Source of the DNA: Salpingoeca rosetta
Lineage: Eukaryota > Protista > Choanoflagellata
Direction of reading: 5' to 3'
DNA: 54,875 bases
NCBI GenBank assembly: GCA_033442325.1
Contig: JAWQFM010000004.1
Span: 1,104,431 to 1,159,305, forward strand
Shown here one piece after another: positions 2,068 to 49,612 of the stretch; position 1 is the stretch's first letter, and every line of letters starts with the position of its first letter. A model generated the notes under the pieces. It saw nothing but the letters and a program-made list of their open reading frames with translations. It did no database searches and was not told the origin of the DNA. The translations under genes and the position numbers were made by a program.

Positions 2068-2707
2068 TTGTCTTGAGTTGCTGTGTGTGCGTGCGTGTGT
2101 GTGGTGCGTGCGTGTGTGTGATTTCGTTTGTGGAAAGGGGGGGGGTCGATGAGGCTTCACAAAACTGTATGGTTGCTGGGTGCAGTTCTTGTCATCGAGT
2201 CCGAGGCTGTGAGCCCGCAGGAGTGCAATTGTAAGCTCGGAGTGTATGTTCAGATAAGAACAAGAATAAACAAGGACACTCAGCTCGCAGAGCATAAGTT
2301 GTGGCACAACACACAAAACGACTTGCAACGACTGATGATACGTGAACACAGTGAACAACAATCGGAACACAGATGAAGTGAGCAGTGATAGGAGTAGACC
2401 GGCTGCACCGATTGCTACAATCGTGAACAATGAGCCTGCTGCTGCTGCTGTCAGCACTCCAGCTCCTCGTCTCCTCAGCGCGTGAAAGCGTTTTTCTCTT
2501 GGCAAGCACTGCTGGGTGTAGCGGTGTGGGGTTGTGTGTTACGCGGGTCTCACTGAGTCAGCAGGTAAATGTGGTCAGAGTCAACAGAGTCAAGGCTTGA
2601 TTGTTTTGTCCCAGTTGGGCAGGGATTCAAATTTCAAATCACGTCATTTCTTGCGTCCACCTTTCAGCCCTTCCAACGTCAACAACAACAACAACAACCA
2701 TAGAACC

Positions 2708-3456
2708 ATGCCCAAGGGAAACAACGAAGAGGAACAACTGGAACAACCTACAGAGCTGCAGCGCCTGTGCAGCCAAGATGAAGCGTTCAAGCCTCTCCAC
2801 CCATTTCTCAAGACCTACCGCAGCGCTGACGTTGCCTTTGCTGATCCGGAGTCACTTGCTGATCCGTTTTCACCACGCCCGCATTTGCACGATGTGGCTT
2901 TGCGGTTCTTCCAGCTCTACTGCTCAGAGCACGACGAGATTGCCGACTTGGACAAGGATCGAAAGCAAGCACTGTCACCAACGAACACTGTGCCGCGGTG
3001 GAATACGCTCGACGTCTCAGCCCGCTACATATCATCCAAGATCAACCTTCGCGGGGAGAAGCAAATCTCTTCTCTCAAGGATGACATCGTGGACTGGCTG
3101 CAGGACATCCCCGACAAGAGCGTCAGGTGCTTGAACATTGCCTTATGCAATCTTCTCGACGGCCCAACTTCTTCAAGACAAGGGCAAGGTGCATGATGAA
3201 GGTCTCATCGTCACGCTCCGTAGTTCCCGCTTCCATGCCGACTTTGATGGGCTCAGAACACTTGTCCAGCACTGCCAGCTCGTGGACATCTGCAGCACAT
3301 CCATGGCCTCCGTCGACAACAAGGACCAGTTTGCGCAGTTGTGCAACGATGGGCTGCTCAGCAAAGTGCTCTTCATATCGGTCCACTTCCGTCGCGATGC
3401 TGCGGTCCTGGACATGTTTGGCGAACGCGATGCGGAGGAATTGTGTTGCTGCGCGC

Positions 3457-3510
<54 letters not shown>

Positions 3511-3528
3511 TTTTTTTTAGTCAAGTGA
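2708..3528 (+). pseudogene. Unknown protein with degenerate LRR-like segments; frameshift/deletion near 3162; 3' end uncertain
   Basis: Coding-like ORF MPKGNNEEEQ...VRCLNIALCNLLD continues in another frame as AQLLQDKGKV...LVDICSTSMASVDNKDQF...LSKVLFIS and runs into a (GC)n(GT)n tract. Confidence 0.5.
3451..3509. repeat. (GC)~10(GT)~20 alternating purine-pyrimidine tract, potential Z-DNA
   Basis: Directly visible gcgcgc... followed by gtgtgt... Confidence 0.9.
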
Positions 3529-3989
3529 ACTCGTCAGAAGTTTTAATATGCGGCCCGACGGTTCACTTAAGTTTTTAATATTAAGAATCCTAGCGCAGAA
3601 CTTTGGTTCTTGCTAGGGAAGCGCCTATAAACAATTCATGCTCGACCCAGGATGACGTGTATCATTTGGTAGGAAGAGTTGTACTATTTGCTACAAAACT
3701 AACTTCTCTTGAATGTAACTCTGTAATCTACAATACCTGGGGGAGCGAGCCGGCTTAGTTTCTGCATGATAGTACCGATAGTGTCCTAGGTATTTGTTGG
3801 TTACGAGCGTCGCATAGACCGTCATTAAAGCCATTAGGTTCAGCCGGCCCTGTCTGGCGGCGCAAAAGAGAAGTGAACCTCCGAGGTTTAACCATCACGT
3901 TACGGAGCTTAAGTAGGTGCGTCTAGTACCCCCATCATATAATTACTAAGATTGTTACGTAACTTTACGTTATCTTAAAATCTTCGCAA

Positions 3990-3990
<1 letters not shown>
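3510..3990. ncRNA. Candidate structured RNA or foreign non-coding insertion of unknown family
   Basis: ~44% GC by hand count of 3541-3960, TA/TAG/TAA-rich unlike the host sequence, no long ORF. Consecutive stems: AAGTGAAC-T-CGTC/GACG-GTTCACTT (3523-3568); CCTAGC..AGAAC/GTTCT.GCTAGG (3589-3617); GCTC..CCCAGG/CCTGGG.GAGC (3640-3746); AGGTTCA/TGAACCT (3836-3880); CTCCG/CGGAG (3879-3907); TAAGAT..ACGTA/TACGT.ATCTTA (3947-3977). Confidence 0.5.
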
Positions 3991-4030
<40 letters not shown>

Positions 4031-4282
4031 AGGCGAGTGTGCTTCCACTTGCCGTGAGAACCGTGTACTGGGATGTGCAAACTCTCCATCACGGCGACCG
4101 GAGTGGTGGAACCACACTGCTCATTCCAGGGCATAGAGGAGGACGACGTTGATGTGCTCTGCGCGTTGCGTCTGCGCTGTTGGCGTCGTCGTCTCCGACT
4201 GCGTCTGTTCTTGGCACCTCGTGCATGGTGCAGCGCAATCTGCCACGATGCCGAGTGCTGCTGTTGCTGGATCTGCTGGTGG

Positions 4283-6909
<2,627 letters not shown>

Positions 6910-7199: not shown

Positions 7200-10100
7200 A
7201 TGGATGAAGTGGATGTGCGGACAGCAGTTGGGGCGGCTTTGACGGCCGTGGTGGGGGTGTCTCTTCTGTGGCTGATGTTTCTGTTGGGGCGCAGAAAGTC
7301 GCGTGAGCAGTTCCAGCACATCACCACCAACCACCCATCATCACTTCTTCTTGACAGTGTTGTGGCACTCACACAGACACAAAGCAGTGATGAGACTGTG
7401 GAAGAGGACACGAGTGATGGTGAAGCAGTGCGGTGGAGGTGGTGGCAGCGGCAGGACAACCAGCTGGACGTGATGGAGCAGTTGATGCAAGAGGCAGGCT
7501 TGCAACATCACATCAAGGAACTCCTTCGATCTATCGCATGCGATGAACCTGCGAGAGATATAGAGTGTGTTGCAATGTGACTTGCCGGGTTTGCATCATC
7601 ACCGTTGTGCACATGCAAGCAGTCCTGCATGACATCTCCTGCAAGCGGTCCAATCATGTAATCAATGCTGTAGCTCGTCACTGGCCTATTCCGCGCCTTG
7701 CACGTTTGAGAACTGACTGGTTTCAACCAAACGCCTATTTTGCAGGCTGGTCGGAACGACATTGGGAACCAAAGGCGCACAAAGCTTGGCAATTGCATTC
7801 GACAGGAGAAACAACAAAAACATCGAGGTTCTGAGGTGAGCACGCCCACAGGCGTGTTGTGAGTGTTGCGATTCCAAGATATGACGCTTGCGATGTGTTT
7901 CCTGGGCCATCTCCAGTGTGCAGTGTGTGGTGGTTCGTGCCTGTAGTATTCATGTGCGCGCACGCTTGCACGTCCGGACACACGGACACGGACATGGGCA
8001 CACACACACGGACACACATACGCACACACGCACGCACGGACACACACACGCACACCCACACACACACGCACGGACACACACACGCACACACGCACACACA
8101 CACACACACACACGGACACTTGCGTTCCTGTCGTGTTCAGGTTGTACGATAACCTGATTGGATCTGAGGACTGCGTCATGTTGGCTGACGCCTTGCAAGG
8201 ATACACCGATCTACGAGAGCTGCAGTCAGTCAATTGAGTGCAGTGCATACGTCGCAGTCATCCCAAGTGTGATCAGTGAGGGAACAAGGCACGCGACACG
8301 GTGATGGGCTTTCTTGTTGAGATTCTTTCCCGACCACCGGCCATTCTCCTTCTCACGCCTTCGTGTATATTGCCATTGGTGTCACTCTTTGCAGCATTGG
8401 GAACAACCCGATTGGACCTCAAGGCTGTCAAGCGTTGGCCACGGCTCTGCGTGACCACTCAGGACTGCAGGAGCTTCTGTGGGTTTCACCCGTGTGTCAA
8501 AATCATGCGTGGGTCATGCTTGTGATTTGCTCTCCCTGCTTCTCTGGCGCCTTACGTGTTGTTGTGGTGCATCACAAATTCCATCACAATCACCATGCAA
8601 GCGGCTCATCATAACTACATCTCGGCCGCCTCGCCTGCTTTTGTCTTGAATCCACGCGCATGTTCTCTCGACTTAGGCTGATCAACGTTGGCGTTCCTGC
8701 TGCCCACGCAGTTGGTGCAGGGTGGCCAGAAGCACGGGACGTCCAGTGGTACATGTGCGTTCACAGCTGCGGCGCTTCTTCATGCTCTGTCGTGTGTTGT
8801 ACCTGCATTCCTCGCCCTTATGTGGATGAACTCAATTTTCTTTGGTCTGGGCTGGCACTTCTAGGTCGGAGGAACGAGAATTGACACGCGGCGTTGAACG
8901 GGAAAAGCAAGGTAAACCCTCACAAGTTGGTGTTGGTGTTTGTTTTGTGAGCGGCCTTGTACACTGCTCTCATGAGCTCGTGACACGGTAAATACGTGAA
9001 CGTCACTGTGTCCCCCTTGTGTGGGAAAGGAACTGGTCAGGCCCTGTCATGGTCTGCACATGCTGACGAGGACGCACATCCGATCGCTGCCTACACGTTC
9101 TGTTTCAGCTCTGCCTGGGGTGACTTGTTTTAATCGCCTCGGACAATGTGTGCCCACTCAGCAAACCTGCTTCTTCACCGCTCTTGTTTCATGTGCGCTG
9201 CTTCAGGCGACCAGCTCGCAGGACATGCGGATGCTATGAACTCGAAGGACGAAACAATCAGGCAGCTCCGTGAGTGCCGATGCATGCTGCGAATTGCCTG
9301 TGCCCTCTGAGTGACCTCGAGTGACTCTGTGGCACCACTCACACGCCTGTGTTTCATGTGCGCTGCTTCAGGCGACCAGCTCGCAGGACATGCAGATGCT
9401 ATGAGCACGAAGGAAGAAACAATCAGGCAGCTCTGTGAGTGCCGATGCATGCTGCGAATTGCCTGTGCCCTCTGAGTGATCTCGAGTGACTCTGTGGCAC
9501 CACTCACACGCCTGTGTTCTGTGTCTGCTTTGCTTCAGGCGACCAGCTCGCAGAACATGCAGATGCTATGCGCACGAAGGACGAAACAATCAGGCAGCTC
9601 CGTGAGTGCCGATGCATGCTGCGAATTGCCTGTGCCCTCTGAGTGATCTCGAGTGACTCTGTGGCACCGCTCACACGCCTGTGTTTCATCTGCATTGCTT
9701 CAGGCAACCAGCTCGCAGAACATGCAGATGCTATGAGCACGAAGGACGCAACAATCAGGCAGCTCAGTGAGTGCTGATACATGCTGCGAATTGCCTGTGC
9801 CCTCTGAGTGACCTCGAGTGACTCTGTGGCACCACTCACACGCCTGTGTTTCGTCTGCATTGCTTCAGGTGACCAGCTCGCAGAGCATGCAGATGCTATG
9901 CGCACGAAGGACGAAACAATCAGGCGGCTCCGTGAGTGCCGATGCATGCTGCGAATTGCCTGTGCCCTCTGAGTGACCTCGAGTGACTCTGTGGCACCAC
10001 TCACACGCCTGTGTTTCGTCTGCATTGCTTCAGGTGACCAGCTCGCAGAGCATGTAGATGCTATGAGCACGAAGGACGAAACAATCACACAGCTCCGTGA

Positions 10101-11817
10101 GTGCCGATACATGCTGCGAATTGCCTGTGCCCTCTGAGTGATCTCGAGTGACTCTGTGGCACCACTCACACGCCTGTGTTTCGTCTGCATTGCTTCAGAC
10201 GACCAGCTCGCAGAGCATGCAAATGCTGCGAACACGAAGGACGAAACAATCAGGCAGCTCCGTGAGTGCTGATACATGCTGCAAATTGCCTGTTCGCTCT
10301 GAGTGATCTCGAGTGACTCTGTGACATCACTCACACGCCTGTGTTCTGTGTCTGCTTGGTCTGGAAGAACACCAAGTGCAGGAGAGCACGGAAAAGCTTG
10401 CGCGAGCAACAGGTACTTTTTTTTTTTTCATCTCCTCTGCCTACATATTTGCCTGCCTGTGTTGTCCTTGTTCATAATTCTCTCACGCCTGGCTGTGTTT
10501 CCCTTCTTTTCGTAGAGTCCCTCTTCAATCTCGACCTGAATCCAGCCCGCTTCGAGGAGAAGAAACGCGCAAAAGACCACGAAGGCAAGCCCATCAAGGG
10601 CGCATTTGGCAAGCTATATCGCAGCACGTTTGCTGGGCACGACGTGGCGCTGAAGGAAGTTGACGATGTTGAAGAGCGACCACGACTGCAGCACCTGCTG
10701 GAAGCAATGAGCGACACAGCAACTTCAACATCAACAGCAGCACAGTCGCGTGTACCTGACAAGCGTGTGCTGAGAGAGGTGGCCGTCCTTGCCTCACTTC
10801 GCCATCCAAACATCGTGCCTTTTCTCGGGCTGTGTCATGACAGCGATCGCAGCACGCTTGCCTTCGTGCTGAGCTGGGCAGAGAACGGGTCCCTGTACGA
10901 CTACATCCACGTACACAAGAAACACATCAGCAACGTCGAGAAGCTGCGCATCTTGAGCGAGGTGGCGGCTGCGATGGAGTTCCTGCACGCCCACGACGTC
11001 GTGCACCGCGACCTCAAGTCGCCCAACGTGCTGCTGGACGCATCGCTCTCCGCCAAGGTGGCGGATTTCGGCCTGAGCGCGTTCGTGCCAGAATGCGTCT
11101 GTGGTGTCGAAGGTGGTCGGCACACCGCTGTGGGCATCACCGGAGCAGTTGTTGGAGCAGCCATTGCGAGCTGACACGGACGTGTTCTCATTTGGCTGCA
11201 TTATGTGGGAGGTGTGGTTTAACACCAAACCCTGGCACCACGGGGAGTACAGCGGGGAACGCATCTCCGGACGAACGCTTGGCGACAAGTACGACAAACA
11301 TGAGTACCTGCCGCTTGATGTTGAGGAGGGGCGGAAAATGGAAGGCGCATTTAAGGCGCTGCTCCGTGGGTGCTTCCAGTCGAGCGGCAATCGTGTTGGG
11401 TTCTGTCAGTTGCACACGGCCCTGAAGGCGCAACACGACGCTGGCGACCGGCTTTCTCAAATTGGCGAGAAGAAACAGCAGGAGCTGCTTCACGGACCAC
11501 CAGATGCGGTGTGGAAGTTTCCACAGCAGCTGCTGGCCGCGGTGCAAGCGACGGAGCTGTCGACGCGCCAATCCGTCCACATTGCACCACTTCAACCTGA
11601 CGAGGACGCCGTCACTGAGGTTTGTGTTTGTGTGTGTGTGTGGGGGGGGGAGTTGTCATGTGTTCTTCGTGTTCTTTGTGTTCTTCGTGTTCTTTGTGTG
11701 CTTTGTGTGCTCGGTGTGCGTGCGTGCGCGTGTCTTGCTTCTTCACAGTGCACTCAACGACCCCATCTCAGCTTGGTGCTGGCATCTTGCTCTTCGCCCT
11801 TCTCACTTTGGAATCCA

Positions 11818-47511: not shown

Positions 47512-48228
47512 CTCAATCCAGAGCTGGTACGTGAGCTGGGATGTTGTGCCATCCAATCTCTCACTGTTCCATGTATTCAATGTCTGCTGTAATGACGGTG
47601 TCGCTATCTCATTCCTGATTTGCCCTGCTCGTGTGCAATCATTGTTGTGTTTGCTCTCTGCGTTGATTGTCTTTGCGTTGGACAAGGATGAGCAAGATTT
47701 GACAGTGATCGCGTTCACGACTGCCGGAGCTACGCCATCATTGCGATTTACACAAACAACCAGTACCTCATCGTCCACATTTTCCCTGCCTACACTCCCG
47801 TCAATCACGATGGGTGAGCAGTTTGCTTCGCGTTCAAACGTGTTCACCCTTTCGCTTGTGTGTGACTTGGACTTGTTGTGCCTTTACGTATGCTACGCCA
47901 TCATTTCGTATTTTGTTTTGTTTATCAATGGCAGTGCCCCCTCATGCCCATATCGCGTTACCTCACTGGTTCATTCCTCGACGCTCCGTTTATATTCCCA
48001 GCTCCTGAGTCCCAGCGCTCCATTATTCGATTTCAGTATGGCCAACGTGAAACTTTCCTTGTTGCTGCCATCGCTGTGGCCGGGGTGCTGCTGTTCAGTA
48101 CTGGCTTTTACTTCTTATGGACATACTGGAAGGGGCGCAACACTATCCGAACACGATATGTGTGGTGGTATCAAGTTGTGAGGCGGAACCGAACCAAGCC
48201 GGTACCATGGACATGGGCCAAGAGCATC

Positions 48229-49612
48229 ACACGAACGCCTTCACCACCTCCACAACCACGGACACCTTCACCCCCTCCTCCACAACCACGGACACCTTCA
48301 CCCCCACCTCCACAACCACGGACACCTTCGCCTCCGCCTCCACAACCACGAACGCCTTCCCCGCCTCCACAACCACGGACACCTTCACCTCCGCCTCCAC
48401 AACCACGGACACCTTCACCCCCACCTCCACAACCACGGACACCTTCGCCTCCGCCTCCACAGCCACGGACACCTTCACCTCCGCCTCCACAGCCACGGAC
48501 ACCTTCACCTACGCCTCCACAACCACGGACACCTTCTCCGCCTCCACAACCACGGACACCTTCGCCTCCGCCTCCACAACCACGAACGCCTTCCCCGCCT
48601 CCACAACCACGTCACCGTCTTCTGCTCCTTCCACAGCATCAACATCATCTACCGCAACTTNNNNNNNNNNNNNNNNNNNNNNNNNNNNNNNNNNNNNNNN
48701 NNNNNNNNNNNNNNNNNNNNNNNNNNNNNNNNNNNNNNNNNNNNNNNNNNNNNNNNNNNNNNNNNNNNNNNNNNNNNNNNNNNNNNNNNNNNNNNNNNNN
48801 NNNNNNNNNNNNNNNNNNNNNNNNNNNNNNNNNNNNNNNNNNNNNNNNNNNNNNNNNNNNNNNNNNNNNNNNNNNNNNNNNNNNNNNNNNNNNNNNNNNN
48901 NNNNNNNNNNNNNNNNNNNNNNNNNNNNNNNNNNNNNNNNNNNNNNNNNNNNNNNNNNNNNNNNNNNNNNNNNNNNNNNNNNNNNNNNNNNNNNNNNNNN
49001 NNNNNNNNNNNNNNNNNNNNNNNNNNNNNNNNNNNNNNNNNNNNNNNNNNNNNNNNNNNNNNNNNNNNNNNNNACCACAACCACGGACACCTTCACCACC
49101 GCCTCCACAGCCACAGCCACGAACACCTTCACCACCGCCACAATCACCACCAACCCCGCCTCCACAACCACGGACACCTTCACCACCTCCACAACCACAA
49201 CCACGAACGCCTTCACCGCCTCCACAATCACCACGAACCCCGCCTCCACAACCACGGACACCTTCACCTCCGCCTCCACAACCTCAGACACCTTCACCTA
49301 CGCCTCCACAGCCACGGACACCTTCGCCTCCGCCTCCACAACCTCAGACACCTTCACCTACGCCTCCACAACCACGGACACCTTCACCTCCGCCTCCACA
49401 ACCACGGACACCTTCACCTCCACCTCCACAACCACGGACACCTTCACCTCCACCTCCACAACCACGGACACCTTCACCTCCGCCTCCACAGCCACGGACA
49501 CCTTCCCCGCCTCCACAATCACCACGCCCTCCACCTCCACAGCCACGGACACCTTCCCCGCCTCCACCTCCACAGCCACGAACACCTTCATCACCTCCAC
49601 AACCACCACGAG
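48229..49612 (+). repeat. Coding 27-30-bp tandem repeat encoding PRTPSPPPPQ
   Basis: ccacaaccacggacaccttcacctccgcct-type units on both sides of the N gap. Confidence 0.95.
48661..49073. other. Assembly gap (N run)
   Basis: Run of n characters. Confidence 1.

Follow-up and report, generated by a model that had tools for sequence, protein, structure and literature searches.

What is a short, non-coding block of DNA with the look of a foreign insert doing between two inverted microsatellites of the choanoflagellate Salpingoeca rosetta? The block, here called the island, could be a structured RNA, a mobile element, a private insertion or a product of the assembly itself. These readings make different demands on its composition, its folding, its copy number and its presence in independent sequence data. 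The window referred to below is the whole stretch of DNA that was analysed, 54,875 nucleotides of GenBank assembly GCA_033442325.1 (contig JAWQFM010000004.1, positions 1,104,431 to 1,159,305 of the forward strand), and coordinates are positions within it unless a longer name is given. The features around the island are as follows.

2900-3441: left flank, genuine host sequence with coding-like open reading frames on the plus strand (contigs of four sequencing runs with 0 differences; host-like composition)
3442-3509: compound microsatellite (GC)14(GT)19.5, to the left of the island
3510-3990: the island, a 481-bp block with sharp edges
3991-4030: (CA)20 microsatellite, to the right of the island and inverted with respect to the left-hand (GT)n
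4038-4400: right flank, likewise genuine host sequence; several contig variants, whose depth is raised from 4073 onwards, suggest that part of it is multi-copy

Composition and genomic context of the island

From the letters alone the island had been described as a sharply bounded, foreign-looking block of lower GC content, and its composition bears this out. The GC content is approximately 43-46%, against 52-58% in the surrounding sequence and 54.5% in the whole window, with base frequencies of 0.27 (A), 0.21 (C), 0.22 (G) and 0.31 (T). The enrichment in TA relative to the rest of the window is equally real: the odds of this dinucleotide are 1.17 in the island and 0.40 in the host, which strongly avoids it. 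Conversely, the odds of CA are 0.79 in the island and 1.72 in the host, where CA and TG are over-used (1.7). All 16 dinucleotide odds in the island fall between 0.74 and 1.20. Scored with a 5-mer model trained on the window minus the island, the island is the lowest-scoring stretch of the entire window; its scores are -0.52 to -0.70, where the background is 0.35 (standard deviation 0.27-0.36).

The island had also been said to hold neither a microsatellite nor a long open reading frame. Indeed, no tandem repeats were found within it, its internal repeats do not go beyond chance 8-12-mers, and its longest open reading frame encodes 51 amino acids. Its position between inverted microsatellites is confirmed as well; the microsatellites and the adjoining GGTT/AACC make up a pair of 42-nt inverted arms with 98% complementarity. 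These are the sole inverted arms at the locus, no terminal repeats of the island's own having been found. A search of the host genome for further copies, which the earlier reading had proposed, found the island once only in the 55.4-Mb S. rosetta genome. One copy in 55 Mb, with inverted arms consisting of microsatellites only, is not the pattern of a mobile element.

The island lies downstream of coding-like plus-strand open reading frames (2534-3440) and upstream of the 3' end of a minus-strand open reading frame (4283-5020); no Pfam matches were obtained for the open reading frames of the flanks. Either intron or spacer would be an admissible annotation of the island, and GT at 3443 or 3445 together with AG at 4031-4032 would permit a plus-strand intron.

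Other parts of the window have features of their own. The segment 4073-4400 is represented by several short-read contig variants with fixed differences, their depth being 3-8 times that over the left flank, which suggests that it is multi-copy or paralogous. Positions 4406-4683 are occupied by (TGT)92, corresponding to a long poly-Asn tract in the 245-residue product of the minus-strand frame at 4283-5020, for which Pfam was blank. A plus-strand open reading frame at 479-2067 has a signal-like hydrophobic start followed by many propeller-like 'NGLIFGIP...SVLIINP' repeats, and gave no Pfam match over 479-1774. A 165-bp unit is present seven times in tandem at 9185-10345, the copies being 93% alike. 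Finally, a sized assembly gap of 413 N is located at 48661-49073 within a proline-rich tandem array (PPPQPRTPSP-like units, 48220-49400).

Letter statistics

The island behaves like a series of independent random letters. The chi2 of its dinucleotide contingency table is 10.2 (9 df, p 0.34), and independence is likewise retained at lag 2 and lag 3 (p 0.80 and 0.62, respectively). The corresponding dinucleotide chi2 values of 12 host windows range from 41 to 197. Phage lambda served as a comparison natural genome of balanced composition: its 465-bp windows have a median chi2 of 20.1, and only 9% of them are as low as the island. In a simulated set of random sequences the value of the island falls at the 66th percentile. 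The longest stop-free frame tells the same story, with 67 codons in the island, a median of 66 in random sequence and a median of 141 in lambda. There is a local departure at the left edge, where a run of eight T residues occupies 3511-3518; by our own arithmetic approximately 0.03 such runs would be expected under independence. This run, together with the low global minimum free energy (MFE) of folding considered below, counts against purely random letters.

Folding and the question of a structured RNA

Compared with dinucleotide shuffles, the MFE of the island has a z-score of -2.28 on the plus strand and -2.83 on the minus strand when folded as RNA, and of -1.76 with DNA parameters. In 12 ordinary segments of host DNA matched in length, the z-scores span +1.9 to -2.7, in addition to one microsatellite palindrome at -8.8. 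The stems named in the sequence-only reading do exist in the sequence. The shuffle-based check which that reading had called for gave a divided result, since the global MFE is modestly low while the paired fraction, the hairpins and the stem count are roughly those of chance. The statement that the island folds almost end to end is not upheld: 62% of its bases are paired in the MFE structure against 61% in the shuffles, and its best 60-nt hairpin has an energy of -19.4 kcal/mol against -18.3 kcal/mol (z -0.5). Strongly folding windows number 15 against 10.4 in the shuffles (z 1.4), and there are four perfect stems of at least 7 bp where 1.2 are expected (P = 0.08). Furthermore, the MFE structure carries negligible ensemble weight and does not coincide with the centroid structure. 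The hairpins are those to be expected of a 465-nt random sequence, this case lying in the lower tail.

The island had also not been recognised as any of several known classes of RNA, and Rfam agrees. No match was found in a gathering-level scan of the whole window. In an Rfam 15 E-value scan of 3300-4200 the best island matches scored 15.4-15.5 bits (E 3.8-4.9), where the gathering scores are 45 and 103. The larger proposal, that the island is a sizeable structured non-coding RNA, an RNA element captured from elsewhere or a mobile element of the non-autonomous kind, is not supported; there is no Rfam match, the folding barely beats that of shuffles, the island is present in one copy, and no relative appeared in the collections searched. 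With folding so near to that of shuffles, and no homologue on which covariation could be assessed, the island does not present itself as a novel structured RNA.

Absence of the island from independent sequencing runs

Public sequencing runs were searched with the 31-mer words of 3300-4250, and contigs from four runs, belonging to four studies, were placed on 2900-4400. The data are Logan contigs instead of raw reads, and a filter drops some records and can leave holes, so that a gap in coverage is no proof by itself. Among the runs listed, the 16 richest in these words are all from S. rosetta and represent at least seven studies (2013-2025); their shares of the sampled words are 0.36-0.39, and none is higher. 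Contigs that reach 3469-3478 on the left and start at 4006 on the right would be expected to contain 355-364 of the 921 31-mers, or 0.385-0.395 by our own arithmetic. The observed word share is thus the one expected from the flanks alone, and so none of the approximately 450 island words occurs in these 16 runs.

The contigs aligned to the locus give the same picture at the level of position. Those of runs X1, X7, X15 and X17 show 0 differences over 2900-3441, as do those of X1, X7 and X15 over 4038-4373, while the right-flank contig of X17 (4042-4271) has 19 differences. Depth in the flanks is 100-240, and in all four runs it is 0 in every bin across 3461-4021. On the left, the short-read contigs enter (GC)14(GT)19.5 by 28-37 letters and then stop, giving an apparent cut at 3442-3521; on the right, they start approximately 32 letters inside the microsatellite, at about 4006. 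No contig bridging both microsatellites was found in these four runs. A unique stretch of 470 bp with 44% GC would assemble trivially at the depth of the flanks. The sample behind the assembly itself is represented by 454 runs from 2010, which have word shares of 0.00-0.03 and are too thin to judge the island.

A check of the junctions had been named beforehand as one that could refute a biological reading of the island. In the contigs of the four runs both flanks are covered and the island has no coverage. At the level of contigs, therefore, the island is absent from runs of the same organism in which its flanks are present, as would be expected of an artefact.

Candidate sources of the sequence

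A number of possible origins for the letters themselves were considered and set aside. A vector, control DNA or a contaminant finds no support in the databases: the island has no blastn match (word size 11) in plasmids, phages or E. coli genomes, and the exact 26-30-mers tried from it were absent from contigs of bacterial and archaeal genomes, of metagenomes and of viruses. Organelle or prey DNA, whether NUMT-like or bacterial, can be dismissed since its source would be in the same runs, which contain no island words, and there is no coding frame. A repeat or mobile element was rejected on the grounds of the single copy, of internal repeats no greater than chance and of the lack of likeness to other blocks. 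A weak negative comes from the public assemblies, in which no gene with the product of an island open reading frame is on record.

Origins in the reading process were tried in the same way. Mixed-bead or flow-order noise of 454 sequencing finds no support; flow distances of 131/112/97 against an expected 114/112/114 give a weak trend in the island, and the two further blocks described below are flat. If the island consisted of two read tails running against each other, their base bias mirrored, its halves would mirror one another, and they do not. The island is also not a garbled copy of its flanks, to which its local similarity is not above that of shuffles.

Similar blocks on the same scaffold

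When the same scan was extended over 200 kb more of the scaffold, two further random-like blocks came to light.

L015:4645-5040 (G000:C4:964645-965040): a block of approximately 400 bp with a (CT)n tract on either side; chi2 5.9; base frequencies compatible with uniformity (p 0.48); fold z +0.93
L016:88-310 (G000:C4:980088-980310): (GT)n, then a 223-bp block, a 100-N gap and (GT)n again; chi2 7.1; fold z -1.83

The chi2 values of the three blocks sum to 23.2 on 27 df (our own sum). No similarity was found of the three blocks to one another or to their flanks, and L015:4645-5040 has no match in Rfam. Folding is inconsistent across the blocks, given the z-scores of +0.93 and -1.83 of the two sisters. 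The block at L016:88-310, which includes a run of seven T residues, looks like a junk tail at the end of a contig. The island shares with these blocks a repeat-bounded site, and one of them stands beside an N gap, both being features expected of an assembly artefact. Ordinary gaps have been kept in the assembly, in the form of 100-N runs and sized gaps. A 356-bp stretch at L010:3613-3968 was also noted in the scan; it is AT-richer and low-scoring, its chi2 of 27 is not random-like, and it is probably a genuine spacer or intron, in contrast to the junk blocks.

Probable assembly filler as the best explanation

The island is most probably unsupported filler of a draft assembly, situated at a contig join bounded by microsatellites and absent from the S. 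rosetta genome. An assembly or inserted artefact had been the fallback of the sequence-only reading, and it is this fallback that the zero depth of the island beside covered flanks favours. On this reading the island has no function. For the published genome, 454 reads were assembled in Newbler; ARACHNE HybridAssemble then brought in Sanger reads from plasmids and fosmids, and manual gap closure followed (PMC4054682). The assembly analysed here consists of 68 pieces, against 154 scaffolds in that report (PMC4054682), and may not be the deposited ACSY assembly.

A plausible course of events can be outlined. Two contigs, each ending in a dinucleotide microsatellite, would have been joined at this locus. 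Long dinucleotide tracts cause slippage of the polymerase, which throws a read out of phase, and the (GT)n/(CA)n pair, a potential 40-bp palindrome, can snap back on itself. A few hundred base calls of noise past the microsatellite, or a chimeric tail, could then have been left untrimmed, and such a tail would have entered the consensus where no better read competed with it. The sizes of the blocks, 200-600 bp, fit the remainder of a read after the microsatellite. One tail of noise has no way of running back into correct sequence, and a second step is therefore needed to account for the seamless join on both sides; the candidates for this step would be two abutted tails or manual closure. The excess of T runs might, speculatively, reflect the behaviour of a base-caller on broad peaks.

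Among the competing explanations, the one closest to assembly filler is that random or placeholder letters were added after assembly, through data handling or deliberately as a control. It would account for statistics that match those of independent random letters and for the lack of any island word in the listed public runs or the collections searched. However, N gaps persist in the assembly, one of them directly beside a block, so that gaps have not simply been overwritten, and the location of the blocks at microsatellites resembles contig ends, which random planting would not give. Nor does a plain uniform generator fit the excess of T runs and the unequal base frequencies, and this explanation is considered unlikely. 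Slightly less likely again is a genuine insertion confined to the DNA prepared for the reference, for example filler captured when a break in the (GT)n/(CA)n palindrome was repaired; later laboratory lines would have lost it or never carried it. The inverted arms, 98% complementary over 42 nt, are a plausible fragile site, and an insertion of this kind accords with the absence data from the later runs (2013-2025). Against it, the flanks are 100% identical in later runs, the sequenced strain is the deposited ATCC culture (PMC4054682), and multiple such blocks would need to share the same history. Moreover, captured natural DNA would be unlike a random-like sequence for which no source was found in the collections searched.

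Readings in which the sequence is biologically meaningful fare worse still. The least probable of all is that an intron or intergenic spacer harbours a true structured non-coding RNA of large size, or else a mobile element of the non-autonomous type. The MFE z-scores of -2.28 and -2.83, several interrupted hairpins of 10-12 bp and the lack of an open reading frame speak for it, but Rfam offered no match better than E ~4 and no relative for covariation, and the single copy is without terminal repeats of its own. The paired fraction and local hairpins equal those of shuffles, the sister blocks fold at z-scores of +0.93 and -1.83, and the sequence is absent from the independent runs, among them some presumed to be of RNA. 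Only marginally better placed, and still very improbable, is the idea that the blocks form a real class of unique 200-600-bp sequences, carried in microsatellites and genes of the reference DNA and missing from later cultures. Were this true, a choanoflagellate would have to excise such sequences in a programmed or recurrent fashion, or capture non-templated filler at fragile microsatellites. The random-like composition of the blocks and their link to gaps conflict with such excisable sequences. Assembly filler remains the explanation preferred here.

Implications

Studies of the origin of animals draw widely on the S. rosetta reference. The island itself is of no biological importance and is a matter of assembly hygiene. 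Nevertheless, if a few hundred unsupported blocks of this kind sit in introns, they could corrupt gene models, the design of guides and primers, and any search for new RNAs or mobile elements. Where 'foreign structured inserts' are encountered in microsatellites of this genome, a check against independent reads should come first, and the blocks are best treated together.

Comparison with known systems

The island invites comparison with several established classes of sequence. Like MITEs and other non-autonomous DNA transposons it is short, non-coding, flanked by inverted repeats and placed in an intron or spacer. It differs from them in having one copy, 'repeats' that are host microsatellites, no target-site duplication and no support in independent reads. 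In its size of approximately 500 nt and its many predicted stems it is similar to the large bacterial RNAs OLE, GOLLD, ROOL and HEARO and to other Rfam families, whereas it lacks a covariance-model match and homologues, and its folding is only marginally above that of shuffles. The blocks as a group bear a resemblance, and a resemblance only, to the internal eliminated sequences of ciliates, in being unique, non-coding, gene-interrupting and missing from some DNA preparations. Unlike those sequences, the blocks are random-like and unbiased in composition, and they adjoin assembly gaps; germline/soma dualism is not known in choanoflagellates.

Untrimmed low-quality or chimeric tails at contig ends are a recognised artefact of draft assemblies. 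Although the island departs from such tails in being joined seamlessly on both sides without an N gap, it is like the untrimmed or chimeric read tails of Sanger/454 hybrid drafts in its place at repeat-bounded contig ends or gaps, its size of a few hundred bases, its uniqueness, its random-like letters and its lack of independent read support.
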